From: Macrostomum lignano | Lineage: Eukaryota | NCBI GenBank assembly: GCA_002269645.1 | Contig: NIVC01001139.1 | Coordinates: 1 to 43,977 of the forward strand | Length of the DNA: 43,977 nt | Direction of reading: 5' to 3' | Part shown: positions 1 through 36,960 of the stretch, piece after piece | Layout of the letters: each line of letters opens with the position of its first letter | Numbering within the stretch: position 1 is the first letter of the stretch | The notes under the pieces: model-generated | Database searches by the model: none | What the model was told of the DNA's origin: nothing | Seen by the model: only the letters and a program-made list of their open reading frames with translations | Translations under genes and position numbers: made by a program

Positions 1-608
1 TAGACAAAAAGCTAAATAAAGTAAAGAGATTTAGAATTTTTTAATTTTCAAGAAATTTGAAGAATTTTGTGTACGAATATAATTTTCATAAGATTTATTA
101 AGCATACCAAATATTAAAGACTTCATTAGTAGATAACTGCTACAGAAAAAACTGCCAGATCCATAGCCATTAGAAAATGGGTTCTAGTACTAGAACTCTA
201 GCTATACTGGCATATACTGGCCATAGTCCAGATCATACTGGCATGCACACCCGAACAAAAATCAATAGTTACAAATTCATGCCAAAAAAATTGAGTGCAT
301 GCGCATTCTTACAACTTTGCCAATATTGCAATAATAATGACCTTTTTTATGTTGTGACAATAAAATGTCCTTTTTGTCATTGCATAATAGACCCTTCTAG
401 ATAAAAAAATTTGGTTAATTTTCTGATTTTTTTGGCGATATTATTTATAGTGGGAAATTGAAACATGTAAAAATTTGTTTAAATGCCTTATTACAAGCTT
501 AAAAAGCAGAAAGTGGTAAAGTTACACAAGAAATGAACCTTTTCACCTATTTTCTATTTCACAATAACTCTTTTCCATGTTCTATAAGTGCATGCCAGTT
601 GCCAGGTA

Positions 609-783
609 CAGTAGCGCAACTAGAAATTTTTCAAGGGGGGGGCGGATTATGAGGGTAAAGTCCAGGAGGGGGGGTGGCAGAGGGGTGGCTCTGTTTTTGG
701 CAAAATTTGCTTGGTCACCCCTTTGATTTTTTTTTCAGTCCCCTGCCTAAGGGGGGCGACCGCCCCCCCTGGTTACGCCACTG
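609..783. mobile_element. 175-bp hAT-type MITE
   Basis: Imperfect 15-bp TIRs: CAGTAGCGCAACTAG (609-623) versus the reverse complement of 769-783, CAGTGGCGTAACCAG (12/15 match). Perfect 8-bp TSD GCCAGGTA at 601-608 and 784-791. An 8-bp TSD with CAG termini is typical of hAT elements. Confidence 0.9.
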
Positions 784-904
784 GCCAGGTATATTTTCTT
801 AGGAGTGATGCAGATGCATGGCCCTAAATCAGGTCGTAAGCCTGAGTCCGGCCAGTGCCAGCATACCGTCGAGGTAGCCCTGAAGGCATCGCTGCAGGTG
901 GTTA

Positions 905-1703
905 GTGATGTGGCCAATGCCCTCAGTCGCCGCAGTGCAATGGCCGTGCCAACGTTCGTTTACAGGTTGGAGGCGGCCTTTCGGCTTGGTTGGCTATCTT
1001 CGAGCCCTCTGTGGCCGTCGTTGCCAACAGACAGTGCAGCTGCGTTTCGAGGCTGCCTTCCAAGTGCACGGAAAAGCTGCTTTCTGTGGGGCAGTCGAAT
1101 CTGCTATGACTCAACAGCAGCTTCAACGAATGTTTGGCGCCAATGCTGGCTCACATCTGCATGCAGCCTGGCATGAAGGGCTTTATGCCATGGTGTGGGC
1201 CGAGGACAGCCACTGCCGAAAGGTCATCTTTGGCAGCGACTGCCCGGATTCGCCACTATGTGCCCTCTCCACCACGACTGACGATCAGTTTAGCCTCGAC
1301 TTCGGGCTACCTAGCAGGCCCGTAGTTAGTAAGGTGCAGGAGGAGGCTTTCTACGCTGCCATGTTTAGCAACCCAGCTGTTTATCAGCTTTTCGGCACCT
1401 CTGTGTGTGCGCTATACGACTGGGCACTGGCAAAGCGCGGGCCGGAAGCGGAGGTTGAGTGTTTACTCGGCTATGGGTCGCCAGTGTCAGCAAGGGGCAT
1501 TCCAGCTAGACGAAACCCTAGAGCTATGGACTTGGCTGCATGGTATCTCCCTCTATCAGGGGCATCGATGCGTGGACCATCACGGCGATTGCCAGCAAGT
1601 GGCTGAAGACTCATCAGGTGCTTCGAAAAAGCAGTTGCAGCATGACCTGGAAGCAGCAGGTGCTTTGGCGACTGGTGGCAACAAAGGGCTGGGTCAACGT
1701 TGA
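905..1703 (+). pseudogene. Degenerate, frameshifted hAT-like transposase C-terminal fragment
   Basis: A protein-like sequence can be stitched across three frames: ...YDWALAKRGPEAEVEC / YSAMGRQCQQG..DETLEL / AWYLPLS / GIDAWTITAIASKWLKTHQVLRK... It resembles the EAxxEx(F)S dimerisation motif and downstream Trp of hAT-family transposases. Recognised from memory only; several frameshifts are needed. Confidence 0.45.
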
Positions 1704-3684
1704 TTGATGCAAGCCATTGACTGACTAATTGAACCAAATCACTGATCCTGGGGACTGGCCCTGTGTGGTATGGGTAGATGTCTGGCATGGGAAAGGGGGG
1801 TGTCCGGCGCGGTTCAGACCTTGGCTGCAATAGGGATGCATGCCAACTGTAATTGTAATGCAATACTGCAATTGTAATTTGCATGCCTTTTTTGGCATGC
1901 AAGGCCAATGCACACCCAAATTTTTGGGCATAGGCCCTATACTACATGATCTGGAGTGTGGTATGCTGGCTGTGGCAAAATTTTCTGGCAGATTGTTCCA
2001 TATACCAGATACTTTACAAGTTTACACGAACCATTTTTGGGTCTATTGTATACCAGAATTTTCCTGTGTATATGTAAGATTCGGGAGTAGGGCACCCAGC
2101 ACGATCCTGACTATGGCCCATATGAATTATTAGGGCCTATTATAGGCCTACAAAGAAAGTTGGGCACCAATAAGCAAACTAAGGTACAAAGTGCCATGCA
2201 TGGTACCAACAAAAAGCATAGGTCTATCTATAGTATACTTAACTAGCCATAATTTAATTACAGTATATTAGGCCAATAAAGGCCCCTAACTAACTATGCA
2301 TGATCACATGATTAAATAAACACATGCGATGCCACATGCACATATTATTGTACTTAAACGTTAAACTTACTTAGAAATGTTGTGCATGAAGAAAGTCTAG
2401 ACATTTAGGGCCTAATTTGGCCTTTCGAACTTCTTGAACACGCAAGTCGGGTTGCTATGCTGGCTGATGATGTTGAAAAATCGAAAACAATTGACTATAG
2501 TCTAAAATACTTAATTTGGCCCAGTAGCACTAGCAGTAGTATAGGCATAGCCGGACGGTCGTTTTAAAAGCAATTTCGGAGAATTAATAAATTCATATAA
2601 AAATAGGTCGGATAGAAATTTTTACTTATATATTTTTAAACAAAAAGAAAAATATTTCAGCATCGTTTTTCGTCAAAATATTTCTGGAATATAAAATTTT
2701 ATTTAAAGGTAAGCCATTGCAATAACTGTCGCGGTCAGTTTTGGCATTGTAAACTTTGAAATCTTTCAGCTTCGAGCCCTCGAGTTATCGTCATCATGAT
2801 GTGCACTTTGCGCGCGCCAGCTGGAACTTACCCGTCTCGCTAGCGAATCACTATCAGTGAATCACTAGAATCAGTATCACTTTCACTATCACTATCACTA
2901 GCGCCGCAAAAAGTATGTCGGACAAATAATATTTTTTTTACCATGGATCTATGGCAGGCATGCATGCGGGTGGCTTACATCAAATCTCTAAAGTCTAATT
3001 TAAAGTTTCGTAGGCCTATTGTACTAAGTATTTACTAGGCCTAATGGTAGGCTAGGCCTAGCTTAATTCAAAGATTACAAAGATTCGTAGATTGTACTTT
3101 TCTGGAGTCAAAATGATTTAACGAACGAAACTTGACAATTGCCGAAGTTTGTAGTTCTATTTTGGGGAACAGGACATTTCGTCCGAATACTTTTTGTCTG
3201 GGTCTTTTCGTCCAGATGAGACATTTCGTCCGAAGGGTACGACATTTCGTCCGAGTCCGATACACAAATTTTAGTCTAATGACTCTAACTAATCGATGGA
3301 AGTGTTTGGGTGAGGGTGTATTCGAGTGCGTAGCAGTGCATTGCTCACTAGTTAAGTTAAGTTCTCTAAGAAGGTGGCTGTATAGGTGCCAATTCAAATC
3401 GAAATCTAAACTCTAGTCGCTAGAGTCTAGGTCTAATGACTGTAGGCCTACTATGTATAGGGGCCTAATTTCATAGGAAAACTTTGAATACTATACTTAA
3501 TAGACACAGTTTCTTGATGAAGGCTACAGGACATTTTGGCAAATTCAAAAAGGTAGGGCCTATACAAATGTAACAAAGTTAAAAATGACAGAGCAGAGGT
3601 AAAATTAACAAATTAAGGTAGAGTAGAGGCAGGGGAGAGTGGGCTTGGCAGTTGCATCATATCTAGTAGGATGGCAGAGTCTAG

Positions 3685-4108
3685 ACCGGCGCATGACCAA
3701 GACCGCCACATACCAAGACCGCCACAGCTCTTACTGACTATTGGAATTGAGGGGAAGCTACCAATCTTTCAGCATTGCTATTGGTTATGATGAGTTGTGG
3801 AGTTAGATGAGGAGGAAGTGTCCTAAGATTGGTCACTAATAAGATGAATAAGTGGCCCAAAATGATTGCAAGTCAACCAGGGCAATTTTAACAATTTAAA
3901 TTAAATGAAAAAAACAAGGAACCTGGCTCACCACCTACCTGGCCAGGCTGGCCTGCTCACCAGTTCCTCTCTCGTGGCCTTGTCTTGCTGGCTCTCCCCA
4001 TCTCACCCCTCCTCAGCACCATCCAATAACATGGCAAGCCAAATTCCTCCCTCTTAGCTCCCCCAAGTGTGGCGGTCTTGGTGTGTGGCGGTCTTGGTCC
4101 TACACCGT
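3685..4108. mobile_element. About 424-bp MITE with about 40-bp TIRs containing a tandem ACCAAGACCGCCAC motif
   Basis: Left end (A)CCGGCGCATGACCAAGACCGCCACATACCAAGACCGCCACA matches the reverse complement of the right end, ACGGTGTAGGACCAAGACCGCCACACACCAAGACCGCCACA. CTAG lies on both sides (3681-3684, 4109-4112). Confidence 0.8.
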
Positions 4109-4811
4109 CTAGACCAGAGGCAGCCTATATTATAATATGCTATGTAACCTATATTAGGCCTATAGTCATATTATTTTTAAAACTTGCAACAGTTGCAAAT
4201 TTAATTCATAACCATATAGGCCTATTCAATTAAAATTTAACCTAAAATTCTATTTTATTAAGTTGATCTTCTTGACCTAACTTCCTAAGCTAATTCAATG
4301 CAAAATTCAGTATATGAATTTCTGGATTGAATTTTATAATGAATCCCAAATTTAATCTTAAGGCTAAATTGAATTGGCTTAAGAGCCCAAGAAATTATGT
4401 ATTAAAAAGAATTAAATCCTATATTAAATTCTACACTTTTAGACCTACTTAGTTTTAGGTCTATTTGCAACACATTAATTTTTGATAATGTGATTTTTTC
4501 AAAATGTGATTTTTTCTATGTGTAACAAAAGTTATATTTTATTTTACTTTATGTAAAATAAAGTTTATATGACCATGAGTGCTTGATTTATTACATGAAA
4601 GTTGAATAATTGACCTTATTTTTATAGACGTAGGCTTATTTTAAGTCAAAAGAATTTCTATGTAAAGTCAAATAGTTTGTAAGATTTAATAGCTTATTTG
4701 AAAATAGTTTATAAATTTGATTCTTTAAGTCATTATTTTTACATTTATGTCACTTATGGCTTATATGGGTGTCAGTTATATTGGCAAACAGACATTTTGG
4801 CAAAAGCCAAA

Positions 4812-5125
4812 CTGATGTATCCATACATGCGCAACCTCCAAAATTTGGTTGGCCGTGCAACTTAGTTTCAACAAAAATGCGACATAGTTTTTGGCCAAAA
4901 ATGCAACTTACGTGTAAAAGAAACCCTAAAGCAAAATTAACACAACTTTGGGTAAACGGCAGGAGTAAATATGACTGTCTTATTAAGGCAAAATGCCTCG
5001 TCATCTACCTAAGTACTACTTGGGTATTTATTCAGGCATTTTTGTGACTTACCTTGGTTGGCCGCCAAATCGGTTGGCCAGATCGGCCGACTCGGCCGAC
5101 TGTTGCGCATGTATGGATGTATCAG
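4812..5125. mobile_element. About 314-bp MITE-like element
   Basis: 24-bp inverted repeat: CTGATGTATCCATACATGCGCAAC (4812-4835) versus the reverse complement of 5102-5125 (22/24 match). TTGGTTGGCCG subterminal motifs occur near both ends. The exact ends and TSD are ambiguous. Confidence 0.7.
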
Positions 5126-5385
5126 AATTGAAATTGTAGCTCATACCTAGTACAAGGAAAAGTGTAATCTAAAACCAATCTAGTCTCTATGCACTTTTCT
5201 CTTCTCTCTTATATTTTGTGAGAAAATGTCTAGAAAATTGGCACATTGAGAAAATACTGCTAGGACCCTGAAAATAGAGATTTGTTAAATGCATATATCT
5301 GGGTGGTCCTCTGTGGTATTGTGTATTTATGGCTTCCCTTTTATTGCATGCACAGCCATGCTGAGCCGCCGTTTTGCTACTGCAG

Positions 5386-5800
5386 GCAAGCGACAGTCAG
5401 CACTGCGTCGATGACATCGACGCGATTTCAGTGTTCGCGGACGCCGACCTGCCCGACATCGACGCTGTGGATGCGGAGGACGAGGCAGAGTATCCGCCCC
5501 CTACCGACTCCCCAGAAACCACTCTGTCCCCTGCGGCGCCCTCCGAGCTGGGCGTCTCATCGCCTCTTCTACCGCCTCCTCAGCCCAGTGGGGTCCATCC
5601 TCCGTCAGCTCATTCGGGCTCCCACAGGCAGCTGCGCCAGTCCGCGCCAGCGCGAGCTTCAATGCTGAGATGCCACGCCGAAGCGGGCGGCAACAAAATT
5701 CAGAAGCGACCATCTTGGGGCAACTTCAATTGGCACCGCGTTTCGGGACCACCGCTGCCTAAACAGAGGTTCATGCCACCCCAAGGCCGCCTCATCCGAG
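5386..5800 (+). CDS. Exon (acidic then Pro/Ser-rich N-terminal region: [39 protein letters not shown]...)
   Basis: Acceptor TACTGCAG| at 5385 and an abrupt rise in GC. Open frame 5374-5958. The 3' end is uncertain because it runs into the 33/32-bp array. Confidence 0.65.
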
Positions 5801-8800
5801 GTCCCGTCCGCCTCCAGGACCGCCCAATCAGTGGTCCGGTCCGCCCCCAGGACCGCCTAATCAGTGGTCCGGTCCGCCCCAGGACCGCCCAATCAGTGGT
5901 CCGGTCCGCCCTCAGGACCGCCCAATCAGTGGTCCGGTCCGCCCCCAGGACCGCCTAATCAGTGGTCCGATCCGCCCCAGGACCGCCCAATCAGTGGTCC
6001 GGTCCGCCCTCAGGACCGCCTAATCAGTGGTCCGGTCCGCCCCAGGACCGCCCAGTCAGCTGTCCGGTCTGCTCCTAGGACCGCCCAGTCCGCCCCCAGG
6101 ACCGCCCAGTCAGCGGTCATCACAGCAGCCGTCCGGGCGCTCCAATTCGCTCCTGTCACGCTTGGGACCTCCGCCGCAGCCGTCGGCCCCACCAGCATCC
6201 AGCCGCCGGGAGCTCCTTGCCGCACGGCTGGAACAGGCCGTCCGGTGCGGCGATTTCGCCCTGGCCGTACAACTGGCCACGTCTGAGGAGGCCGTGAAGC
6301 TGGAGATCCTGGCGGACAGCGGCCTGAACTGCCTGGCCGATCAGATTGCCCAGGCTCAGACTGGCAGCTTCGTCACCGCCATTCGGGCGCTCGGTCTTCT
6401 GCGGAAGCCCACACTCAAGTGAGAGAGAGAGTTCTCAAGTTACTTGCCCTGAGTTCAGGTCCCCAGTCTGTCTCCAGTGTGACTTGTCCTGTCCGCAGTG
6501 TGACTTGTCCTGTCCTCAGTCAGTGTCTCCAGTGTGACTTGTCCTGAGGTCAGGTCCCCAGTCTGTCTCCAGTGTGACTCTTCCTGTCCCTAGTCAGTGT
6601 CTCCAGTGTGACATGTCCTGTCCCCAGTCTGTTTCCAGTGTAACTTGTCCTGTCCCCAGTCTGTCTCCAGTGTGACTTGTCCTGTCCCCAGTCTGTCTCC
6701 AGTGTGACTTGTCATGTCCCCAGTCTGTCTCCAGTGTGACTTGTCCTGTCCCCAGTCTGTCTCCAGTGTGACTTGTCCTGTCCCCAGTCCGTCTCCAGTG
6801 TGACTTGTCCTGTCCCCAGTCTGTCTCCAGTGTGACTTGTCCTGTCCCCAGTCTGCATGGATAAGCGCAGTGACCCGGCTCTACCTGCAATCACCCGAGC
6901 TCACCGCCCATCTCCGGCCCCAATTCCGCAGCGACCTGGCCAAGCTGGAGTCGTGGGCCTCCCATTGCTCAGCCGAGGATCTGAAGGGCTGCGCTGACGC
7001 CGCTTTCGATTTGTTTTGCAAGCTGCTGCCGACCCACCTCAGCCGCGATTTGGTCAGCTCATTCTTTAGGTAGCCTGGGCTGCCCTGATGCCTCCGCAGT
7101 TTTCTATTTTACCTCTTTATCAGTTGTTGGCACTGGTATTCTGATATCCCTCGAGCTCCAATCCAGTGAGACTCGCTCTCAAACCCATCCAGAATCGCCC
7201 TCAAACCCATCAAGAATCGCCCTCAAACCCATCCAGAATCGCCCTCAAACCCATCAAGAATCGCCCTCAAACCCATCCAGAATCGCCCTCAAACCCATCC
7301 AGAATCGCCCTCAAACCCATCCAGAATCGCCCTCAAACCCATCAAGAATCGCCCTCAAGCCCATCCAGAATCAACCTCAAACCCATCCAGAATCGCCCTC
7401 AAACCCATCCAGAATCGCCCTCAAACCCATCCAGAATCGCCCTCAAACCCATCAAGAATCGCCCTCAAGCCCATCCAGAATCAACCTCAAACCCATCCAG
7501 AATCGCCCTCAAACCCATCCAGAATCGCCCTCAAACCCATCCAGAATCGCCCTCAAACCCATCAAGAATCGCCCTCAAGCCCATCCAGAATCAACCTCAA
7601 ACCCATCCAGAATCGCCCTCAAACCCATCAAGAATCGCCCTCAAGCCCATCCAGAATCGCCCTCAAACCCATCAAGAATCGCCCTCAAGCCCATCCAGAA
7701 TCAACCTCAAACCCATCCAGAATCGCCCTCAAACCCATCAAAAATCGCCCTCAAACCCATCCAGAATCGCCCTCAAGCCCATCCAGAATCGCCCTCAAAC
7801 GAAGTCCACCACCCAACCCCAGGTTTTTCCTGCCCCTGGAGAGCTGGGGGCACATCTGGGACGGCCTGATGCGCTTCGGCCACTCGGGCAACGTGACAGA
7901 GAAGACCTTCGCACAGTGCCTGGAGGCCGTTGCCGACGGCAGGGCTTCTGCGTATGGTGACTCTGCTGCTCAGCTCGTCAGCCTGATGGTGCCCGAGCTG
8001 CTGGCGAATAGCCAGGTAGGAATTGAACTTGAATCCACCCCATTCCATCTGTACAGAATCAGCACCCCATCCCACCTGTACAGAATCAGCACCCCATCCC
8101 ACCTGTACAGAATCAGCACCCCATCCCACCTGTACAGAATCAGCACCCCATCCCACCTGTACAGAATCAGCACCCCATCCCACCTGTACAGAATCAGCAC
8201 CCCATCCCACCTGTACAGAATCAGCACCCCATCCCACCTGTACAGAATCAGCACCCCATCCCACCTGTACAGAATCAGCACCCCATCCCACCTGTACAGA
8301 ATCAGCACCCCATCTCACCTGTACAGAATCAGCACCCCATCCAACCTGTACAGAATCAGCACCCCATCTCACCTGTACAGAATCAGCACCCCATCTCACC
8401 TGTACAGAATTAGCACCCCATCCCACCTGCTCCGAATCAGCACCCCATCTTACCTGTACATCTATCAGGAAATCTCATTAGCATGCATAAAAAATCCCAC
8501 CTGTTCCAGTGGATCACCGCTGACCTCCTCGACCGCCTGTGGCTTGAACTGGCCCGGCAAGGCGACTCCAACAGCGCCCATCTGATCGGCAGCCAGCGGG
8601 CCGTGGTGTGCACCGGCCAGCAGCAGCGGGCGGCCTTTTTGACTAGATTGACGGATGCGGTGAGTGCGCTGACTTTAAGATGCCACTTGTGAATGACACT
8701 TGTCAGCTGAGTTTGCTGAGGGAGTCTCGGCTAAATGGCGCTACGAGTATCTGACTGAGAATCGCCCCTCAACAGTCGCCACACAATCCAAAAGAATCTC

Positions 8801-11800
8801 CCCACGTTAATCTCCCCACGTGAATCTCCCCACGTGAATCTCCCCAACGTGAATCTCCCCACGTTAATCTTCAAAAGTAAATCTCCCCACGTTAATCTCC
8901 CAAAGAAAATCTCCCCAAGAGAATCGCCCCACGTGAATCGACCTCCAAGCTACCGCTCTGTTCCCCCGCCAGGTGTCGGAGATCATCCAGCGCGACTCCG
9001 GCGACTTCAAGCCTCTGTGCTGCATTCTGGACTCCTGCGGCGGCGCCTTGGACGAAACTGAAAGCCTGCAGGCTGCTCTGCTCGAGGCTCTGCTGGATTG
9101 CCAGCAACAGTCTCACCAGCTGGACCGGCTGTGCAGGGACTTCAAGCTCTATTGTGAGTGATCAGGCTTTCTGTGTGCTGCGAGCATGAAGCTGCATAAA
9201 ATTAATGTGAATGCCATTTTCATCAATCTCTACTCCCTCTGGTAAATAAACCAGATAACACCACAAGATAACATTCGCTCAAAAAAGATAACATGCCCTA
9301 TTCCGGTTATGCAAAATGTTATCTTGTATGAATCTTGTTTGCGTGACGAAATCTTACGTTTCCTTGTTTCAAACAAGATTCAAAAAGGATTTGCTGACCA
9401 GATAACAGTCGGGTAATTCGTGCGAATCCTGCAGGGAAACATCGTGTTATCCTGTTTGTTATCTTGTTTGTTATCCTGTCTGGCAAACAGGATTCGCTGA
9501 CCAGGTAACAGCCGGGTAATTCGTGCGAATCCTGCAGGGAAACATCGTGTTATCCTGTTTTTTATCTTGTTTTTTATCCTGTCTGGCAAACAGGATTCGC
9601 TGAGCAGGTAACAGTCGGGTAATTCATGCGAATCCTGCAGGGAAACATCGTGTTATCCTGTTTTTTATCTTGTTTGTTATCCTGTCTGGCAAACAGGATT
9701 CGCTGAGCAGGTAACAGTCGGGTAATTCATGCGAATCCTGCAGGGAAACATCGTGTTATCCTGTTTGTTATCTTGTTTGTTATCCTGTCTGGCAAACAGG
9801 ATTCGCTGAGCAGGTAACAGTCGGGTAATCCATGCGAAAGAAGCCGGAAGGCATTGACATCAAATTTCGCAGTAAAGATGCGTATAAGAAGTTGGTGATT
9901 CAAGATTTTATGAGTAGCATCTATATTTAACAGCGGGTTGTACTTTGTAAGCGCCTTATACAAACTAAACAAGGAACAGGAACAAGCTCAACAGGAACGA
10001 AAACTTCTGGAGAACAGCGTGGCATACGTATGAGTTTCGACAGTCCAGTTATAAGTAGACCTACTTATACTGTGGCTACTAATTGATACTACTGAATTGG
10101 TGATCTGCTGCGAGCTGGTGCTGAGTCGCAGGTCGGACCTGCTGTACTCGGACGCGACTCTGATGGCAGTCGACGCGTGAGCCAGACGTTTGAAAGATCG
10201 GGTCGCGCGCGTGGAAGGCGATTAATGAGACCACTGACGGGGGCTTGCATTATATGCCGGCGCAATGGAACGACTCTGCATTATTAAAGTTAAATTAAAT
10301 GGCGATGGAAGGCAGTTTCTCCAAAATATACACAGTTATAAAGAAACAGTAATGTACATCCACACTCGATCGCCCAGCTCTAACAGACAGCGACGGTTCG
10401 CCGACAATCATTACCAGATTATACGATTGTTCACTAGTAATGTCAGCTGCGTCGATAGTATTGTCATTCGTAGCATAGTCGTCGTCCGGAATCAACTGGC
10501 TTTCGTTGATCGGCTGCTCGTAGACCGGAGACAAAGTGAATGGTGTATCATCTGATGCGCCGGCTCGCGCGGCGCTGGCTTCGTTGCGTCCACGAAATGC
10601 CGACTACGCTGGAAACTCTTACCTGATTGTCTTCGCAATCCCGTGCGCCAACGGTAATATCCAACCGACTTGGCGTTGCAGATGTCGCTAGTGCGATGGA
10701 CGATCGTCCAACGGCGTCATCAACTGCGTCGTTCGAAGCAGTGACACCCTCCGGAAAAAGTGGCTGACAAGATCGCCGACACTCATGGTCTGTAACGACT
10801 ACTCTCTTGACTCGATCTGCTCTCGGCTGGTGCAACTGCAAACGCCTTAGACAAACCAATGGAGCATACACCGAAAAAAATCGGATTAGCGTCTATCTTA
10901 ATAGGAAAGCTGCTTTGCATACTGGGCCAGTTAGAGCTATTTGGAACTATGCCACAGTCTCCGTCTAGACACCCAGCTGTGCCAAACAATATGGTTGGCT
11001 GACTCATGCTTCTAAGCGTCAAATATGACGATAGAATCATTCAGCCCGTTGACACACTAAGCAGCTGTGATAGAATACATGCCAGTGGTAGTCAAACCTC
11101 TTGCACACTATCAGGGCGCAACAATTTTTCAATTGTCACCTGTACGGAGGATGGGCACAGCCTCACATTACGGACGCTACAGTGCCTCCGAAAAGCAGAT
11201 CAATTCACCTTGCAATTTCGAGGCTTTATTACCCCTCGGATTAAAGATTGACCCGCGTAGTCAAATAAAAGTGACTACTCTTAGCAGCTGCCTTGAGCCA
11301 CAACAGACGCGAGGTTTGATTACCCCTCGTAGGCCAGCATTTTCAGTCAACTGCTCAACTTTGATTTATCGGTTGAAGCGGGGTTCAATTATCCCTCACT
11401 GGTGGCTATACATCAACACTGCAGACGCTTTAGACAACCCAATGGAGCATGCTCTAGCAAGAGCTAGAATAACGTCTGTCTTAAAAAAAGGCTACCTTAG
11501 AACTGGGCCAGTAGGAGCTTTTGGAACCATGCCACAGCTCCATCTAGACACCCAGCTGCACCAGATAATAGGGTAATCGGATACACTAAGTAACCGCGAC
11601 AGACTACATGCCATTGGGAGTCAAACCTCTCCAGCACAATAAGAATGCAATAGTTTGTCGGAGAGCCAACAAAGCTATCACCTGCAGGGAGGGTGGGCAC
11701 GGCCTCACATTACGAGCGCTAGCGTTTGCTGATATATGGCACTTTACCCCTCGCAGGTCAGCTTAGCAGCTGCCTTGAGGCACAACAGAAGCGAGGATTG

Positions 11801-14800
11801 ATTATCCATCGCAGGTCAGCTTATCAGCTGCCTTGAGCCACAACAGAAGCGAGGATTGATTATCCATCGCAGGTCAGCTTATCAGCTGCCTTGAGCCACA
11901 ACAGACGCGAGGATTGATTATCCATCGCAGGTCAGCTTATCAGCTGCCTTGAGTCCCAACAGAAGCGAGGATTGATTATCCATCGCAGGTCAGCTTATCA
12001 GCTGCCTTGAGTCCCAACAGAAGCGAGGATTGATTATCCATCGCAGGTCAGCTTATGAGCTGCCTTGAGCCACAACAGAAGCGAGGATTGATTATCCATC
12101 GCAGGTCAGCTTATCAGCTGCCTTGAGTCCCAACAGAAGCGAGGATTGATTATCCATCGCAGGTCAGCTTATGAGCTGCCTTGAGCCACAACAGACGCGA
12201 GGATTGATTATCCATCGCAGGTCAGCTTATCAGCTGCCTTGAGTCCCAACAGAAGCGAGGATTGATTATCCATCGCAGGTCAGCTTATCAGCTGCCTTGA
12301 GTCCCAACAGAAGCGAGGATTGATTATCCATAGCAGGTCAGCTTATGAGCTGCCTTGAGTCCCAACAGAAGCGAGGATTGATTATCCATCGCAGGTCAGC
12401 TTATGAGCTGCCTTGAGCCACAACAGAAGCGAGGATTGATTATCCATCGCAGGTCAGCTTATGAGCTGCCTTGAGCCACAACAGAAGCGAGGATTGATTA
12501 TCCATCGCAGGTCAGCTTATGAGCTGCCTTGAGCCACAACAGACGCGAGGATTGATTATCCATCGAAGGTCAGCTTATGAGCTGCCTTGAGTCCCAACAG
12601 AAGCGAGGATTGATTATCCATCGCAGGTCAGCTTATGAGCTGCCTTGAGCCACAACAGACGCGAGGATTGATTATCCATCGCAGGTCAGCTTATCAGCTG
12701 CCTTGAGTCCCAACAGAAGCGAGGATTGATTATCCATCGCAGGTCAGCTTATCAGCTGCCTTGAGTCCCAACAGAAGCGAGGATTGATTATCCATCGCAG
12801 GTCAGCTTATCAGCTGCCTTGAGTCCCAACAGAAGCGAGGATTGATTATCCATCGCAGGTCAGCTTATGAGCTGTCTTGAGTCCCAACAGAAGCGAGGAT
12901 TGATTATCCATAGCAGGTCAGCTTATGAGCTGCCTTGAGTCCCAACAGAAGCGAGGATTGATTATCCATAGCAGGTCAGCTTATCAGCTGCCTTGAGCCA
13001 CAACAGACGCGAAGTCCAGTCTTATCCATAACTTCATAGAGTCAATGGGAGCTGATCCCTGTGGATTTGCCGGATCACTTGGTCTAGATCACTGAAGAAT
13101 TCCGACTGAACTCCTGAAATCTCATCCAGAACATTTTCATTTGGAAAACCTGAAATTTGGGTCTACAATTAGAATTTAGCAGTGTTCAAGGTGAAAAATT
13201 TTGGAAAATGCAGCCGGAACAGCTTTCCTTTTTCCCGAACTTTGGCAGGATCACATTTCCGGAAAAAGGAGCTATTCCGGACTAAAAATGCTGATCCGGG
13301 CCTTCACTTGAAAATCAATTAATAAATCAGGCCTGGATCACGAAATTCTGAAAAAAATTATGGGTGAAAAGTACAACTGGTTCTTACAGACCGGATAACA
13401 CAAAGGCATCTTGATTGAAATCTTTTTCCATTATCTGGTTTGCAAACCAGATTCGCATCCTGTTATCCGGTAAATTTCAGATTCACACAGGTTTCTTACA
13501 GACTAGATAACGCACAGTTATCCTGATTTAAATCTTGTACTGTTATCTGTCTTTCAAACAAGATTCGCACCATGTTATCCTGTGAAATTCCGATTCAAAC
13601 AAGATTCGATCAACCAAGTGTTGTAACCCGGGTCGGTTTGGGTGCCCAGTCCCGAGTACAATATATATTATATGTGATATAACAGGCGTTGTGACGCTCT
13701 GTCTGTACTTTTATGAATACGACGAGCAGGCGTGACGACGCTCTGCGATAATAGTTCGATCCCTCTGGTGTTGTGACACTCAGAGTTCACGCTGCGGCTC
13801 GAGGTGTGGTGACACTCTCGAGTGCTTCTAGTCTCTATACCGTAGGGTGTACGCAATATATAGGGTAAACGGTACAGTACTACAAAAGCTATATGATCTC
13901 CCGGCGTTATGACGCTCTGGCAAGAACTCGGCCTAGCAAGCTTCCAGAAAAAAAAGGACTCAAACAGCAGGCGGCTTACCAGTGGCCAAATGACTGTTCA
14001 CCGTTTATTGCTCGTAGGTCTCAAGCGCAGGTTCGCAGGTTCGCACGTTTGTTGATTGGCTCGTAGGTGTCAAACGCGGCTTCTAACTTCTTCTCAATTC
14101 TCCAAGATTCTTTTTAAAGACTAACTTCTCAATTGAGCTCTCGGGTTTGTTTTATCGTAGGTAGCTAACGTCGCGGTTTCTTACTTAAGCAAAGTCTCGC
14201 GCTTGCAACCACGGAGCACACAAAACACTAAATAGCACAAACAGGACTAACAGAGAAACAGAGAAACCGAGAAACAGAGCGAAGGGCGTGAGCAAGGCCT
14301 AGAGCCGCATTAAATAATACCCAAACCCTGGGGCCAATGGCCCCACCGGCTAAGCTCACCAAAACAAACCACGCCGGCCCAGCCAATCAAAACCCCGCCT
14401 AAGGGGGGAGGGGCTGCACCCGCGCCAAAGCTGGCCCGGCCGCAGCCAACCAGCCCTGAGCACGGGGCAGGGGCATGGCTGGGGAGGGGCACGCGCAAAG
14501 CCCGGCCGGCGGCCAAACCCTGCCACGCCCGCCAACCCCCCCCCCCCCAACCAGCCCCAAAGTGCAACGCGCCCTGCCAACTGACAAGGGCGCATGCACT
14601 ACACAAGATAACAGAGAATTATCTGGTGGCGAATCTTGTACTGTTATCTGTCTTTCAAACAAGATTCGCACCATGTTATCCTGTGAAATTCCGATTCAAA
14701 CAAGATTCGATCAACCAAGATAACAGAGAATTATCTGGTGGCGAATCTTGTACTGTTATCTGTCTTTCAAACAAGATTCGCACCATGTTATCCTGTGAAA

Positions 14801-17800
14801 TTCCGATTCAAACAAGATTCAATCAACCAAGAAAACAAAAAATTACCTGGTGGCGAATCTTGTACTGTTATCTGTCTTTCAAACAAGATTCGCACCATAT
14901 TATCCTGTGAAATTCTGATTCAATCAAACAAGAAAACAAAAAATTACCTGGTGGCGAATCTTGTACTGTTATCTGATTTTCAAACAAGATTCGCACCATA
15001 TTATCCTGTGAAATTCTGATTCAAACAAGATTCAATCAAACAAGAAAACAAAAAATTACCTGGTGGCGAATCTTGTACTGTTATCTGATTTTCAAACAAG
15101 ATTCGCACCATATTATCCTGTGAAATTCTGATTCAAACAAGATTCAATCAAACAAGAAAACAAAAAATTACCTGGTGGCGAATCTTGTACTGTTATCTGA
15201 TTTTCAAACAAGATTCGCACCATATTATCCTGTGAAATTCTGATTCAAACAAGATTCAATCAAACAAGAAAACAAAAAATTACCTGGTGGCGAATCTTGT
15301 ACTGTTATCTGATTTTCAAACAAGATTCGCACCATATTATCCTGTGAAATTCTGATTCAAACAAGATTCAATCAAACAAGAAAACAAAAAATTACCTGGT
15401 GGCGAATCTTGTACTGTTATCTGATTTTCAAACAAGATTCGCACCATGTTATCCTGTGAAATTCTGATTCAAACAAGATTCAATCAAACAAGAAAACAAA
15501 AAATTACCTGGTGGCGAATCTTGTACTGTTATCTGATTTTCAAACAAGATTCGCACCATATTATCCTGTGAAATTCCGATTCAAACAAGATTCAATCAAA
15601 CAAGAAAACAAAAATTATCTGGTGGCAAATCTTGTCATGTAATCTGATTTCTAAGCAAGATTCGGGCCATGTTATCTGGTGAAATTCAGATAACTCACCA
15701 GATAACAGTCAAACAAGAAAACAAAAAATTACCTGGTGACGAATCTGGTGGTTTCACCAGTTTCGCACCTCAAACAAGGAAATCGGTAGTGAATCTGACA
15801 AGATTCGCAAATTATCTTGTGGTGTTATCTGGTTTATTTACCAGAGGGCTTCGCAGATCCTCAATCGGGATCCCCAGATCCCAGGTCCTCAATTGGGATC
15901 TTCAGCTCCCAGATCGTCAATCGTGATCCCCAGATCCTCACATCCCGAGATCCTCAATCTGATCCCTACGATCCCAGATTCTCAATCGAGATCCCCAGAT
16001 CCTCACATTCCAAAATTCTCAATCTGATTTCCAGTTCCTCAATCGGCATTCCCAGATCCTCAATCGGCATTCCCAGATCCTCAATCGGTATTCCCAGATC
16101 CTCAATCGGCATTCCCAGATCCTCAATCGGCATTCCCAGATCCTCAATCGGTATTCCCAGATCCTCAATCGGCATTCCCAGATCCTCAATCGGTATTCCC
16201 AGATCCTCAATCGGTATTCCCAGATCCTCAATCGGCATTCCCAGATCCTCAATCGGCATTCCCAGATCCTCAATCGGTATTCCCAGATCCTCAATCGGCA
16301 TTCCCAGATCCTCAATCGGCATTCCCAGATCCTCAATCGGCATTCCCAGATCCTCAATCGGCATTCCCAGATCCTCAATCGGCATTCCCAGATCCTCAAT
16401 CGGTATTCCCAGACCTCACACTGTAGGCCTTTCATTCGCCCCTGCAGATGGCGGCGCCCAGCAGCAGTCGCTGGGCCAGTTCCCCTGCCGCATCGGGCTG
16501 CTGCTGATCGTGCGGCTGGCCTCCACTGCCCAGTGGCCAGAGGTGCTGGCCTGCCTCCAATGCCTGCACCGGCAGCCCCAGCTGAATGTCCCGGCCGGTC
16601 TGGCGGCCACCGGGACCAGGGTGGCCGTGGCCGACGCGGCGCTGGAGGCATTTCTGCACTGCGATATGCTGGACCTGGCCAATGCGCTGGTTGCCACCTC
16701 GGGCGGCCCCGGCCCGTTCGGCCTGGCCCTGCCCGACCCCTGCCCGGAAGGTGCGATGGATCGCGCGGTGCTGCTGCTCAGCCTGTCGCGAACCTGCGCG
16801 CGCCGTGGCGGCGACGGCATGGCCGCAAATACTGTGAATGCGTTCATTGCGGCCGCCCAGCTGGCCGACTTCTGCGACGGTGAGCGGCCGGGCCGAATTG
16901 AGATGTCGAATTGGGTGCTGTCAATCAAATTGGAATCAAATTGGAGCTTTCAGTCACCAATCTAACAGCTGTCATTCACCAATTTAACACATGTCATTCA
17001 CCAATTTAACACATGTCATTCACCAATTTAACACATGTCATTCACCAATTTAACACATGTCATTCACCAATTTAACACATGTCATTCACCAATTTAACAG
17101 CTGTCATTCACCAATTTAACACATGTCATTCACCAATTTAACACCTGTCATTCACCAATTTAACAGCTGTCATTCACCAATTTGCTATCTGTCAATCACA
17201 AATCGAGTAGCTGTCAATCAAAAAGTGAGAAGCTGTCAATCACAAATCAAGTAGCTGTAAATCACAAATCAAGTAGCTGTCAATCACAAATCAAGTAGCT
17301 GTAAATCACAAAGTGAGTAGCTGTCAATCACAAATCAAGTAGCTGTAAATCACAAAGTGAGTAGCTGTCAATCACAAATGGAGGAGCTGTCAATCACAAA
17401 GTGAGTAGCTGTCAATCACAAATCAAGTAGCTGTCAATCACAAATCAAGTAGCTGTCAATCACAAATCGAGGAGCTGTCAATCACAAAGTGAGTAGCCGT
17501 CAATCACAGAGTGAGTAGCTGTCAATCACAAAGTGAGGAGCTGTCAATCACAAAGTGAGTAGCCGTCAATCACAGAGTGAGTAGCTGTCAATCACAAATG
17601 GAGGAGCAATAAAGCTAAATCATCCAACCGTAGTGCAATGAGATTGCGTCTAATCAAACACTGGATCAAAGCCGCTCACCCCCGATCTCCAGAGGATTTC
17701 CGCCGCACCTCGTACGCGGCCGCCTATTCCTGCTGTCTCCGCGATCTGGCCACCACCGCCAGGTCCTGCCGGCCAGGCCTCAAGCACGCGTACCGGCTGT

Positions 17801-18369
17801 TCAACGCCAGCACCTCGTTCCCGAATCTGCAGCTGAAGGCCCCGGCCACCGCCCTCCGCCTGATGCTCTGCTCCGCTGTGCGGCTGTCCCTGCCCGACCT
17901 GGCGCTCCCCCTGGCGAAGATTGGCACCCGGTTCGGCATCTACCGAGCCCTGCAGCCCGACTGCCTCCAGCTCAGCCTGCCGGGCGATCTGGCTGGCGAA
18001 GAGTCCGCCGCCCTGCTAGCGCTTGCCATCCGCTGCCTTCGCGATCGGCGGCGGCGCGGCCACCTGGACGACGCTGTCGGCGGCCGCTGCCTCCGCTTGG
18101 TGCCGCTGCCGCCGGACGGCCGCGACCCGGAATTTGTCCGGCTGGCCGGCCTGCCGCCCGACGCCGGCGTCCGGACAGTCCACGCCGAGGACGCCACCGA
18201 CTGCCTGCTGGCGGTGCTGCAGCGGGCGGCCGACGTCTTCAACTCCACGCTGATGGTCGGCCCCGTCGGCCTGCTGGCCCGCCGGCCGCGCTTCAGCTTG
18301 CAACCGGACGGCCCGGCCATCAGCCTGTCCGGACAGGAGGTTCGCGACCTCATGGACCAGCTCGACTAA
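5386..18369 (+). CDS. TOPAZ1: Multi-exon gene encoding a TOPAZ1-like helical-repeat protein (5' end not resolved)
   Basis: Candidate exons 5386-5800, 6100-6418, 6932-7069 (or 6866-7069), 7823-8015, 8510-8659, 8973-9153, 16448-16879 and 17693-18369. All introns are GT-AG with matching phases (1,2,2,0,0,1,1), totalling 2505 nt = 834 codons plus TAA. The motifs RIG..QW..L..L..R..V...A.E.FL....LD.A and LR....S..R..L...A....K.....G.Y..L...L.LP..L...E match the TOPAZ1 C-terminal region as I remember it. Gene structure is well supported; the name is not verified. Confidence 0.65.
5800..6099 (+). repeat. 33/32-bp tandem array GGTCCGGTCCGCCCC(C)AGGACCGCC(C/T)AATCAGT, about 9 units
   Basis: Unit lengths read directly: 33,33,32,33,33,32,33,32, then one degenerate unit. 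Confidence 0.95.
6100..6418 (+). CDS. Exon (...[44 protein letters not shown]...RKPTL)
   Basis: Open frame 6027-6422 with coding-like codon usage. Strong donor AA|GTGAGA at 6419 (phase 2). The 5' boundary is uncertain. Confidence 0.8.
6460..6851. repeat. 32-bp minisatellite CCCCAGTCTGTCTCCAGTGTGACTTGTCCTGT, about 12 units, intronic
   Basis: Direct tandem repeat; explains ORFs 6594-6890 and 6712-6894. Confidence 0.95.
6932..7069 (+). CDS. Exon ([45 protein letters not shown])
   Basis: Phase-2 acceptor TTCCGCAG|C at 6931/6932; a weaker alternative is GATAAG|C at 6865/6866. Donor AG|GTAGCC at 7070 (phase 2) matches the next exon. Confidence 0.75.
7170..7800. repeat. 22-bp minisatellite AAACCCATCCAGAATCGCCCTC, about 28 units, intronic
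   Basis: Direct tandem repeat; explains ORF 7166-7960. Confidence 0.95.
7823..8015 (+). CDS. Exon ([39 protein letters not shown]...PELLANSQ)
   Basis: Acceptor CCCCAG|G (phase 2) and donor CAG|GTAGGA at 8016 (phase 0). Confidence 0.85.
8048..8460. repeat. 27-bp minisatellite CTGTACAGAATCAGCACCCCATCCCAC, about 15 units, intronic
   Basis: Direct tandem repeat. Confidence 0.95.
8510..8659 (+). CDS. Exon ([50 protein letters not shown])
   Basis: Acceptor CTGTTCCAG| (phase 0) and donor GCG|GTGAGT at 8660 (phase 0). Confidence 0.85.
8790..8940. repeat. Short degenerate array of AATCTCCCCACGT(G/T), intronic
   Basis: About 7-8 imperfect copies seen. Confidence 0.8.
8973..9153 (+). CDS. Exon ([60 protein letters not shown])
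   Basis: Acceptor CCCCCGCCAG| (phase 0) and donor T|GTGAGT at 9154 (phase 1). Confidence 0.85.
9395..9838. repeat. 103-bp left subterminal tandem array, about 4.3 units
   Basis: GGGTAATTC recurs at 9411, 9514, 9617, 9720 and 9823. Confidence 0.9.
10830..11760. repeat. Diverged tandem duplication (two copies, offset about 580 bp shrinking to about 480 bp)
   Basis: Shared blocks: GCA(A/G)ACGC(C/T)TTAGACAA (10839/11421), ACTGGGCCAG...CTAGACACCCAGCTG (10921/11503), CCTCACATTACG (11161/11703) and TTAGCAGCTGCCTTGAG (11281/11763). Confidence 0.85.
11751..13012. repeat. 58-bp minisatellite GCTTATCAGCTGCCTTGAGCCACAACAGAAGCGAGGATTGATTATCCATCGCAGGTCA, about 22 units
   Basis: Direct tandem repeat inside the CACTA-like element. 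Confidence 0.97.
13530..15700. repeat. 112-bp right subterminal tandem array, about 10-11 units, interrupted by the solo LTR
   Basis: AATCTTGTACTGTTATCTG recurs at about 13530, 14632, 14744, 14856, 14957, 15069, 15181, 15293, 15405 and 15517. Confidence 0.9.
13619..14603. mobile_element. 985-bp solo LTR, probably Ty3/Gypsy type, nested in the subterminal array
   Basis: Begins TGTTGTAA and ends CACTACA (TG...CA). 4-bp TSD CAAG at 13615-13618 and 14604-14607. Removing it restores one unit of the 112-bp array (...TCAACCAAG|ATAACAGAG...). Confidence 0.85.
15860..16412. repeat. 21-bp minisatellite CCCAGATCCTCAATCGG(C/T)ATT, intronic
   Basis: Degenerate from 15860 and near-perfect from about 16035 to 16411. 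It explains the SSIGIPR repeats of ORF 15817-16965. Confidence 0.95.
16448..16879 (+). CDS. Exon ([40 protein letters not shown]...[18 protein letters not shown]...QLADFCD)
   Basis: Acceptor CCCCTGCAG|AT (phase 1, matching the donor at 9154) and donor G|GTGAGC at 16880 (phase 1). Confidence 0.9.
16955..17180. repeat. 22-bp minisatellite TCATTCACCAATTTAACA(C/G)(A/C)TG, about 10 units
   Basis: Direct tandem repeat in the last intron. Confidence 0.95.
17188..17605. repeat. 22-bp minisatellite (AG)CTGTCAATCACAAA(TCA/GTG)AGT, 19 units
   Basis: Direct tandem repeat in the last intron, distinct from the preceding array. Confidence 0.95.
17693..18369 (+). CDS. Terminal exon ([19 protein letters not shown]...[28 protein letters not shown]...VRDLMDQLD*)
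   Basis: Acceptor ATCTCCAG|AG (phase 1), a long GC-rich open frame and TAA at 18367-18369. Confidence 0.9.
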
Positions 18370-18430
18370 AGCAGATGGACGGGAACTTTGTTTCTTCCCG
18401 GCTGAAGGGCTGAAAAGTTTCCATTGACAG

Positions 18431-18468
18431 GCGACAGACAGACAGACAGAGAGGCAGACAGACAGCCT

Positions 18469-18508
<40 letters not shown>

Positions 18509-18521
18509 GGCATAGACAGAC

Positions 18522-18580
<59 letters not shown>

Positions 18581-18660
18581 CAGACAGACACAAAGACAGA
18601 CAGACAGACAGACAGACAGACACAGACAGACACAAAGACAGACAGACAGACAGACAGACA
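18431..18660. repeat. (ACAG)n microsatellite just 3' of the stop codon
   Basis: Seen directly. Confidence 0.97.
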
Positions 18661-19479
18661 ATTAACTGTTTCCTTTATTCATTTTTGTTCTGAAAATGCC
18701 TTTGACTTAGAGGATCTTTGCAAAAGAACGGAAGCTTCCCGTCTTTTTATTTGTCTTACTCGACTGCGGACCAGTTCGTATCTGGGGAAATTATTGAGTT
18801 TTTGAAGGCCAAAGATGGGGCTGTGGTAACACACTGAATCTGTTCTCACACAATGGCAGTGGCGCAAGATTAAATGCTTGATAAAGAACCGCTAATTCCC
18901 AGTCAATAATATTTTTGTTTTCGCAAATATTTTAGCGGCCTCTCACGGCTTTGCTGCTGTGGAAATTGTTTAAATTAATTTTGCTGTTTTTGAATCAGGT
19001 TTTTTCCCTACCTGCTTTTACCTGCTTTCTTACAAAAGCAATTCTGCGGGCTGGGTTGAGGGCTCGCTGCAATAACCGGCGTACTGAGTATGCAGGTTCT
19101 TATAGGGGAAAATTAAACATACTGGAATGTTCGCGCGATGCTACTCATCAGCGTCTTACTGTGCACTGCATATACCACCCTGCACTCAGCATTTATGCGC
19201 CATTAATCTCATATAATTAGGGCCAGCTAAGCTTTGTTATAAGCGGTAGAAAATTCTTTTGCATACGGCAATGATTTGTCATTTACTGCAGTTCACTTTT
19301 CTCAGTCAGAGCTTCCCGCGGTGTCTTAAATGCTAAATAATAAAACAAAACTTATAAAAAAAATTGTAAGAACAGTTTTTCCACCTGTGATCAAACCAGT
19401 ACCGCCTGCTTTGGCTGCGTACCTTGGCTTTCAATTATTGCTTTTTGCTGGACCGGAGTACTTGCACAATGCACTCCTA

Positions 19480-25183: not shown

Positions 25184-26410
25184 TCAATCTTCATCGACCA
25201 GCTGGCGCGGCTTTCGCTGCTTCGAGTTCGGCTTCATCCCCTGCTGCTGCTGCTCCGGCGGCTGCTGCTCCGGCGGCTGCTGCTCCGGTGGCTGCTGCGG
25301 CGCCTCCTCGATGAAGCCAGCGGCCTCCTCGTCCTCCCCGATGCCGTCCTCAATCTCGACGGTGCCGTTGACTCGCTGGCGACTCCGCTCGACGGTCGAG
25401 TAGCGGTAGGTCGTGTTGCCCCTCGAACCGCCGCCGGGCCCACCGCCGCCGCCGCCACCGCCGCTGCTGCCGTCCCCGCCAGCCCGGCGCAGGCAGGCGG
25501 GCATGAGGCTCTGGAACTCCTTCTGGAAGTTGTTGTTCATCCAGCCGTACAGGAAAGGGTTGTACATCACGGAGCTCATGGCCAGCACGTGGCAGATGAA
25601 GAACAGGCCCTGGAACAGGTTCTCGTTGATGAAGCTGATGTCCTTCACCATCCACAGCAGGTTCAGCGGGATCCAGCAGATTACGAAGATCGCCACCATG
25701 GCGATGAGCATCCGGTTGGTGCGCCGCTTTCGCCGGATGTCCAGCTCCTCCTTGGTGCGCGACTTGTTGGCCAGCGTGTTGTTCTTGTAGCGGTTGCTCA
25801 GCGTGACGCTCACCCTGCTGTAGCAGACCGTGATGATGGCGCACGGGAGCAGGAACTGCAGCACGAAGCTGATCACGGTGAACACGGCCCGGTACTCGGC
25901 CTGCCAGTCCTCGATGCAGCTCACCTTGGTGCCGTTGTCGGAGACTTTGATCTTCTGGAACACGGCGATCGGTGTGCTGATGAGTACGGCAACTAGCCAG
26001 ACTATGAAGACTATGAGCAGGCAGAGGCAGGTCTTCATCCGCGGCACGAACGGGTGGACGATCACGAAGTAGCGGTCAATGGCGATGGCGGTGGAGGTGA
26101 GGCTAGAGACGTACACGGAGACCCCCATGGTCATGGGCATCAGCTTGCAGACCAGCGACGGCAGGGTCCAGCTGTCCATGAACATGGCGGCTGGGGTCAG
26201 CGGCACATTGAGCGTGCTCATGATGATGTCGGAGATGGCCATGTTGGTGATGAAGATGTTCGTGATGGTCTGCATGCCGCGCTTCCGCAGCACAACGAAG
26301 ACCACCAGGGCGTTGCCCAGGGTGCCCATGAGGCCGATGGTGGCGTAGAAGGTGATGGTGATGCCGCGCATCCAGGCGGGGTGGAGGCTGGTCCCGTTGC
26401 CGCCCGACAT
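25184..26410 (-). CDS. Rhodopsin-like (class A) neuropeptide GPCR of the NPY/NPF-sNPF/PrRP receptor group, intronless CDS, 408 aa from the first ATG
   Basis: Seven hydrophobic segments with TM1 GN, TM2 NMAISD, TM3 C...AIAIDRY, TM4 W, ECL2 Cys, TM5 FLLP...Y, TM6 FVICWIP and TM7 MSSVMYNPFLYGWMN (helix 8 NFQKEF). The N-terminal NGT sequon follows the ATG at 26410. The listed ORF start at 26506 is a TTG. The exact ligand class cannot be fixed without phylogeny. Confidence 0.95.
   Translation of the reverse strand: MSGGNGTSLHPAWMRGITITFYATIGLMGTLGNALVVFVVLRKRGMQTITNIFITNMAISDIIMSTLNVPLTPAAMFMDSWTLPSLVCKLMPMTMGVSVYVSSLTSTAIAIDRYFVIVHPFVPRMKTCLCLLIVFIVWLVAVLISTPIAVFQKIKVSDNGTKVSCIEDWQAEYRAVFTVISFVLQFLLPCAIITVCYSRVSVTLSNRYKNNTLANKSRTKEELDIRRKRRTNRMLIAMVAIFVICWIPLNLLWMVKDISFINENLFQGLFFICHVLAMSSVMYNPFLYGWMNNNFQKEFQSLMPACLRRAGGDGSSGGGGGGGGPGGGSRGNTTYRYSTVERSRQRVNGTVEIEDGIGEDEEAAGFIEEAPQQPPEQQPPEQQPPEQQQQGMKPNSKQRKPRQLVDED

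Positions 26411-29929: not shown

Positions 29930-30853
<924 letters not shown>

Positions 30854-30854
<1 letters not shown>

Positions 30855-33183: not shown

Positions 33184-36960
<3,777 letters not shown>

Follow-up and report, generated by a model that had tools for sequence, protein, structure and literature searches.

The window, as we call the whole stretch of DNA analysed here, is one complete contig of the flatworm Macrostomum lignano (NIVC01001139.1), 43,977 nucleotides (nt) in length. Its + strand carries, at positions 5386-18369, a gene that the original prediction had read as an invertebrate homologue of the germ-line protein TOPAZ1. This spliced gene is real, far beyond chance. 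Taken as a whole, it is probably best explained as a gene of seven exons, whose product is a remote, fast-evolving relative of the C-terminal block of TOPAZ1 (about 620 amino acids (aa); the domain PF14669 and the region after it) and lacks the CCCH finger. Judged from sequence, the protein family as such is likely to be homologous to this block. The register of the PF14669 match, the higher score of a paralogue and a collinear match to a further TOPAZ1 exon argue for such a relationship, whereas all scores lie below the family cut-off, the CCCH finger is missing, and no relative was found beyond Macrostomum.

Similarity to TOPAZ1

TOPAZ1 is required for male meiosis in mouse, and we know of no molecular mechanism established for it. 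In the literature searched, TOPAZ1 was not connected with an invertebrate homologue in any paper. The protein (C3orf77) is described as vertebrate-conserved; its features are a PAZ-like segment, a CCCH finger, a divergent N-terminus, and a block of ~620 aa, conserved among vertebrates, which begins with the finger (C-x9-C-x4/5-C-x3-H) and extends to the C-terminus (Baillet 2011, PMC3206057). The corresponding Pfam family is PF14669 (Asp_Glu_race_2, TOPAZ1 domain), with a gathering cut-off of 26.3 bits.

The human TOPAZ1 peptides cited in the original prediction proved to be real. With these peptides as bait, fragments of three mammalian exons (X, Y, and Z) were recovered at 96-100% identity. 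Exon X matches PF14669 at 39.8 bits over profile positions 58-94; exons Y and Z lie outside the model. Downstream of PF14669, one TOPAZ1 exon ends in AHYKS and another starts with LGCYPP, and the fragment of exon Z runs to LQIVLKR. Look-ups of contigs gave none for P0001 and just one, of 926 nt, for the mammalian fragment P0019. Both peptides quoted from the window are present as well, one ending in DMLDLA in the open frame 16300-16962 and the other ending in GDLAGEE in the open frame 17581-18366.

The window protein matches PF14669 over profile positions 72-147, with an expectation value (E) of 0.24-0.25 and a score of 11.4-11.5 bits, and this is the only Pfam match of exon 6. The tripeptide RIG falls on profile positions 77-79 and a tryptophan on position 92 in both the window protein and the mammalian exon (P0018). 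The first of the two proposed TOPAZ1 alignments is therefore reproduced exactly in its register, whereas its significance, taken alone, is at chance level (E 0.25).

Relatives of the window protein were sought with phmmer among 1.84 billion representatives, in an exhaustive search with P0001, the UniRef entry A0A1I8JIE9, as the query. This search returned five proteins, all of them from M. lignano, and three of these are fused or frame-shifted models of the window gene. The searched collection contains only exon-sized fragments of TOPAZ1, and the absence of TOPAZ1 from this result is uninformative. P0005 (PAA93537.1, Mlig029558g1; 1,137 aa) is a distant paralogue, which shares 24% identity with the query (E 9e-23) and is collinear with the window protein over the whole ordered region of ~660 aa (match of ~610 aa). 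By sequence comparison, these proteins make up a small family, so far of M. lignano only, with two deeply diverged paralogue groups, the window gene and Mlig029558/P0005.

P0005 was found without reference to TOPAZ1. Its match to PF14669 lies at the position homologous to the match of the window protein, with its tryptophan within two positions of that in the other two sequences, and reaches E 3e-4 (21 bits) when the sub-region is used; PF14669 is also the top match of this region. As whole proteins, P0005, P0006, and P0007 match PF14669 with E values of 1.4e-3 to 2.8e-3 (17.8-21 bits overall for P0005). The other helical halves of the window protein and P0005 gave no match to PF14669, and none was seen in any of 10 reversed or shuffled controls. 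The score of P0005 argues against pure chance, because a protein of 24% identity should lose, not gain, resemblance to PF14669.

A further similarity was revealed by alignment of human exons Y and Z to P0005. The best Smith-Waterman score was 59, with a shuffle p of ~0.001 (5,000 query and 2,000 target shuffles) and a score of 27 in reversed controls. On P0005, the alignment of exon Y begins ~20 residues past the extrapolated end of PF14669; since it starts beyond the PF14669 match, it represents a second, non-overlapping, and collinear similarity. The same place was found for exon Y by hhalign against the P0005 group, with an E value of 0.022, which was the best of the hhalign tests and is at best weakly suggestive. 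The second proposed TOPAZ1 alignment can be followed by chaining from the window protein through P0005 to the human sequence (GIYR versus GCYP block), but not in direct comparison of exons Y and Z with the window protein (p 0.18).

Gene structure

The gene model was built from open frames and splice sites, and two junctions were then corrected against P0001. Namely, the acceptor of exon 2 was moved from 6865 to 6931 and that of exon 7 from 17671 to 17692. The spliced model shared 95% identity with P0001, and after the correction only 2 substitutions were left in about 700 aa. As judged by inspection of the splice sites, exons 2-7 (6932-7069 to 17693-18369) join in phase. All six introns are of the type GT[G/A]AG..CAG, and these are the splice motifs reported for M. 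lignano (PMC8629364).

A near-identical copy of the gene, Mlig000331g2, either paralogous or allelic, is present elsewhere in the assembly, on a separate contig of 254 kb, and encodes the protein P0009 (PAA65681.1; 896 aa). Alignment of P0009 onto the window by tblastn uses frame 1 from 5404 to ~5780, changes to frame 3 for 5781-6416, and then continues through exons 2-7. In translation, the last five exons show 100% identity with two independent protein models of M. lignano, P0009 and P0010; exon 2 agrees with P0009. The GenBank models of this assembly derive from a genome-guided RNA-seq transcriptome (PMC5730564), so that the junctions common to P0009 and P0010 have indirect RNA support.

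Exon 1 (5386-6418, + strand as for all features of the gene) encodes an acidic and proline-rich disordered N-terminus and the start of the helical region, and ends with the donor ACTCAA|gtgaga. Exon 2 (6932-7069) is bounded by the acceptor ccgcag|CGACCT and the donor CTTTAG|gtagcc, and its junction, RKPTLN|DLAKLESW, is the same in P0001 and P0009. Exon 3 (7823-8015) holds the ATG at 7869 from which the 528-aa GenBank model starts; P0010 begins with MRFGHSG. Exon 4 (8510-8659) has phase-0 junctions at both ends, with a spliced sequence equal to that of P0001 and P0009, and exon 5 (8973-9153) ends in phase 1 at the donor TCTATT|gtgagt. The PF14669-like stretch is encoded by exon 6 (16448-16879). 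Exon 7 (17693-18369) encodes the last helical hairpins and an alpha/beta tail modelled with low confidence; its junction, ADFCD|EDFRRTSY, recurs in P0001, P0009, and P0010, and it includes the TAA stop codon at 18367-18369. A possible poly(A) signal, the first AATAAA/ATTAAA hexamer past the stop codon in a pattern search, is located at 18869-18874. A (GACA)n microsatellite of ~58 copies (18433-18660) follows directly on the stop codon, in the 3' untranslated region or just downstream.

Seven exons are thus supported for the window gene instead of the eight proposed earlier: the proposed exons 1 and 2 are the single exon 5386-6418, and P0009 reads straight through the repeat within it. Splicing in phase was borne out by the canonical junctions. 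The proposed length of ~834 codons was not, since the count depends on the choice of junctions, two of which allow more than one in-phase solution; our own eight-exon versions had 856 or 827 codons. Nor is the gene, earlier described as cryptic, missing from the databases. GenBank protein PAA71787.1 (BOX15_Mlig010746g1, "hypothetical protein"; 528 aa) is already annotated on the window contig, and this model is a 5'-truncated version of the ~900-aa protein.

Content of guanine plus cytosine (GC) is 0.59-0.72 in the exons versus 0.40-0.56 in the introns; at third codon positions it is ~0.80, as computed on the initial eight-exon splice. Each of the six introns (within 6419-17692) consists to 49-86% of tandem repeats with a unit of its own. 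The periods are 32, 22, 27, 14/57, and 22 nt, and intron 5, which precedes exon 6 and comprises 7,294 nt, contains arrays of 103, 58, 112, and 21 nt. Several of these repeats are open in at least one frame and give rise to long spurious open reading frames (ORFs).

Exon 1 repeat and 5' end of the gene

Exon 1 contains a coding tandem repeat of 11-aa units at 5779-6087, with Tandem Repeats Finder periods of 33/65/98. Consecutive units measure 33, 32, 33, 33, 32, 33, 32, and 33 nt and form a 98-nt higher-order unit (33+32+33) in ~3 copies. In P0009, the repeat is spanned as four in-frame units of 33 nt (11 aa each) within one continuous exon. In the window, the frame is shifted by one base at each of the three 32-nt units and at a C4 run near 5785, where P0009 implies C5, and a TAA occurs in frame 3 at 6021-6023. 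A frame-restoring intron inside 5600-6240 was considered and rejected: more than 100 GT/AG pairs would keep the frame, none is singled out, and the intact copy reads through the repeat. Because the 32-nt units break the frame of exon 1, the 528-aa ORF from exon 3 is the sole GenBank annotation here.

Behind the frame break is either a homopolymer error of the assembly, which is highly redundant, or a duplicate that is truly degenerate at its 5' end; a frame-restoring intron would be absent under both alternatives. That the breaks are PacBio homopolymer errors, and that the window truly encodes the full protein of ~900 aa, is plausible without being probable. Each of the four shifts turns C5 into C4 within a C-run, the Canu/PacBio assembly, which underwent Pilon polishing, has high redundancy (PMC5730564), and exons 3-7 do not differ at all from the intact copy. 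However, the 32-nt units contain, besides the C4 run, a CCTAAT variant that always accompanies them, and they recur in the regular 98-nt higher-order repeat with 0% indels, a pattern more in keeping with true duplication of a variant unit than with random error. Transcript-based annotation of the window contig, moreover, gave only the 528-aa ORF. The window copy counts among the redundant duplicates in the DV1 assembly.

The sequence CTGCAG at 5380-5385 is a putative spliced-leader (SL) trans-splice acceptor, which fits the motif [T/C]TNCAG of SL acceptors in M. lignano. The 35-nt SL of this flatworm ends in ATG (PMC8629364); joined to GCA AGC GAC, this ATG reads into frame 1 of exon 1. The intact copy is flagged as 5' partial in GenBank, that is, it has no genomic ATG. 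The mRNA probably starts by SL trans-splicing at 5386, with the terminal ATG of the leader serving as the start codon.

Protein architecture and predicted fold

The intact product of ~900 aa would be composed of three parts: a disordered N-terminus, a helical solenoid, and a poorly modelled alpha/beta tail. The N-terminus is acidic, then proline-rich, and carries the 11-aa repeats. Most of the ordered region of ~660 aa is a TPR-like solenoid of helical hairpins. The AlphaFold2 model obtained from six sequences has a mean predicted local distance difference test score (pLDDT) of 65.8, compared with a poor 51 for the model from a single sequence. Residues 85-460 form a run of helical hairpins, mostly with pLDDT of 75-92, while values are below 50 over the N-terminal 81 residues of P0001 and mostly 30-60 in the last ~140 residues, which show a few short strands. 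Of the helical repeats and terminal alpha/beta module that had been proposed, the former are seen in the model, and the latter appears only at low confidence.

Foldseek comparison with the PDB, which includes no TOPAZ1 structure, retrieved generic TPR-type solenoids (IFT-A, Naa15, Ctr9, and APC/C) with E values of 2e-4 to 6e-3 and template modelling (TM) scores of at most 0.2; a profile search of PDB sequences gave no matches. The predicted fold supports a helical-repeat scaffold. The earlier suggestion of a PPR-like RNA-binding protein was not sustained: no PPR or Smr model of Pfam matched at E values up to 10 when segments of the window protein, of P0005, and of the human exons were scanned, and a single plant mitoribosome chain appeared among the Foldseek results, at rank 45. 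Interpretation of the C-terminal module as a degenerate Smr domain behind PPR-like repeats was dropped for the same lack of Pfam support. A weak match to the LUBAC tethering motif PF25393 was also recorded in the first helix (6204-6270; 22 residues, E 0.0035-0.02, 15-17.6 bits versus a cut-off of 27.5) and is probably due to chance.

Alternative explanations

Several results weigh against a relationship to TOPAZ1. All PF14669 scores are below the Pfam cut-off, the best being 21 bits versus 26.3; that of the window protein is itself at chance level, and in one control another family was matched at E 0.21. Spurious cross-matches arise easily among helical-repeat proteins. When three shallow alignments of mammalian exons were compared by hhalign with the combined flatworm alignment, the matches were non-significant and off the expected register, and the direct comparison of human exons Y and Z with the window protein points the same way. 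The pattern C-x6-14-C-x4-6-C-x3-H was found neither in P0001 and P0005-P0009 nor in any of the three + strand frames over positions 1-19000, and Pfam scans of the full model, P0009, and P0005 gave no PAZ match. Neither the exhaustive search nor two word-indexed searches, made with the spliced model and with a profile of the window protein and P0005, detected relatives outside M. lignano, so that nothing bridges the flatworm and vertebrate sequences. In addition, if the family is TOPAZ1-like, sequence comparison makes P0005 a better candidate orthologue than the window gene. Lastly, a positional RNA-seq table lists Mlig000331.g3, whose identity with the window gene is ambiguous, as 'Non-Specific', i.e. 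not enriched in the gonad region (Brand et al. 2020, PMC7336406 supplement). No other match was obtained when the literature and its supplements were searched for the gene identifiers; main texts gave none.

The same data could be read as a Macrostomum-restricted, TPR-like solenoid without common ancestry with TOPAZ1, in which the similarities are cross-matches of amphipathic helical repeats. The restriction of all matches to one species, the sub-threshold PF14669 scores, the non-significant hhalign results, the lack of the finger, and the generic character of the Foldseek matches are what this explanation would lead one to expect, and TPR_19 and the TTC21 ARM/TPR domain are also among the weak matches of the P0005 sub-region. 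It accounts poorly, however, for a match to the one family that had been named beforehand, out of 24,736, for the equal register in two proteins of such low identity with the higher score in a previously unseen paralogue, and for the second collinear, non-overlapping match to a real TOPAZ1 exon. The absence of PF14669 matches from the other helical parts and the shuffled controls also speaks against it, and we regard this explanation as rather unlikely. Still further from the data is the identification of the window gene as the nuclear pore protein Nup85, which is taken from the UniRef name of A0A1I8JIE9 only. Nup85 is likewise an alpha-helical solenoid, but no Nup85 family was among the Pfam matches of the model, P0009, or their parts at E values up to 10, the PDB profile search was empty, and none of the top 50 Foldseek matches was so described; the sole nuclear-pore entry, 7tbk_A2, ranked 29 with a low TM score. 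UniRef names across the members and relatives of this protein are mutually inconsistent (Nup85, Sec16_C, PNPLA, reverse transcriptase, MI domain, and TPR_REGION) and for this reason unreliable, while GenBank calls the protein hypothetical. The Nup85 label is unsupported, and its being correct is extremely improbable. A distant relationship to TOPAZ1 remains our preferred explanation.

A separate case among the database models is P0002 (UniRef A0A1I8JIB2; 2,451 aa), an older M. lignano gene model, which lies outside the window. In this chimeric prediction, a ligand-gated ion-channel gene and the gag/protease segment of a retroelement are joined to the first ~375 residues of the window protein in a single product.

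Possible function and significance

The solenoid may serve as a binding scaffold for partner proteins or ribonucleoproteins, with the repetitive, proline-rich N-terminus adding multivalent weak contacts. The protein could act in germ cells, in analogy to TOPAZ1 of the mouse. One tentative scenario, which we consider doubtful in its full extent, is that both Macrostomum genes descend from a bilaterian TOPAZ1 ancestor and the C-terminal solenoid predates vertebrates; the CCCH finger would then be a later gain or a flatworm loss, and at least one flatworm copy would keep a germ-line role.

RNA interference, in situ hybridization, and transgenesis are routine in M. lignano. If the scenario above is true, the molecular mechanism of TOPAZ1 would become testable by these methods. 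A flatworm relative would offer a cheap system for study of the conserved C-terminal block and would date this block to before vertebrates. The practical value is limited by the sub-threshold evidence, by the position of the window gene as the more divergent of two paralogues, and by the broken first exon of the window copy. The gains for annotation are that the Nup85 label is wrong, that the 528-aa model is truncated, and that Mlig029558 is the better gene for follow-up. The gene, already annotated as hypothetical, probably adds a new, divergent member to a known family.

Other features of the contig

Upstream of the gene, at 805-1908, there are overlapping ORFs of 123-233 aa with a GC content of ~0.47 and without Pfam matches. 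The - strand contains an intronless ORF of 440 aa at 25184-26506, which encodes a rhodopsin-family G-protein-coupled receptor (PF00001, E 2.5e-54) with a glycine-rich, PEQQP-repeat C-terminal tail and resembles receptors of the neuropeptide or amine type. The window was also scanned for Rfam families and tRNAs, with no matches.

A segment of ~1.5 kb occurs twice, at 30587-32070 and 33709-35192, with an offset of 3,122 nt and ~98% identity between the copies. Between and around them are long tetranucleotide arrays, including (CTGT)n at 29930-30854, (TGTC)n at 33185-33976 and 36310-36989, and (TCAC)n. This arrangement suggests a macro-tandem duplication of ~3.1 kb. The last 3.4 kb of the contig (40540-43977) is an array of (AGGAG)n, ~700 copies, with extreme GC and AT skew, and this array is probably the reason why the assembly stops here.

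Comparison with known systems

With generic TPR-type scaffolds, such as the TPR subunits of IFT-A and APC/C, Naa15, and Ctr9, the window protein shares a run of helical hairpins, and these scaffolds are its best Foldseek matches in the PDB. The TM scores are only 0.1-0.2, however, identity is 9-13%, and no TPR or PPR model of Pfam is significant. The resemblance is a likeness of class, not family membership.

P0005 and the window protein share the motifs F.CLEA..G.AS, RLWL, QW..L..L, AT.LR..LC, GT..GIY, RDP.F, and AVLQRA, and both possess a disordered, low-complexity N-terminus. The PF14669 score of P0005 is 7-10 bits above that of the window protein, whose gene is the faster-evolving and GC-richer copy.

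Vertebrate TOPAZ1 differs from the flatworm proteins in having a CCCH zinc finger ahead of the conserved block and a PAZ-like segment, neither of which they contain, and in its size (1,600-1,700 aa versus ~900 aa for the window product). At the two exon ends where a comparison was possible, the intron positions differ, and the flatworm members score below the family cut-off and are known from M. lignano alone. The likenesses are in overall architecture, namely a long, divergent, largely disordered N-terminus followed by a conserved, mainly helical block of 620-660 aa, and in PF14669 as the top Pfam match at the equivalent position with an equal RIG...W register. For P0005, they extend to a collinear match with the exon downstream of PF14669 (...LRRLITS...G.YP).

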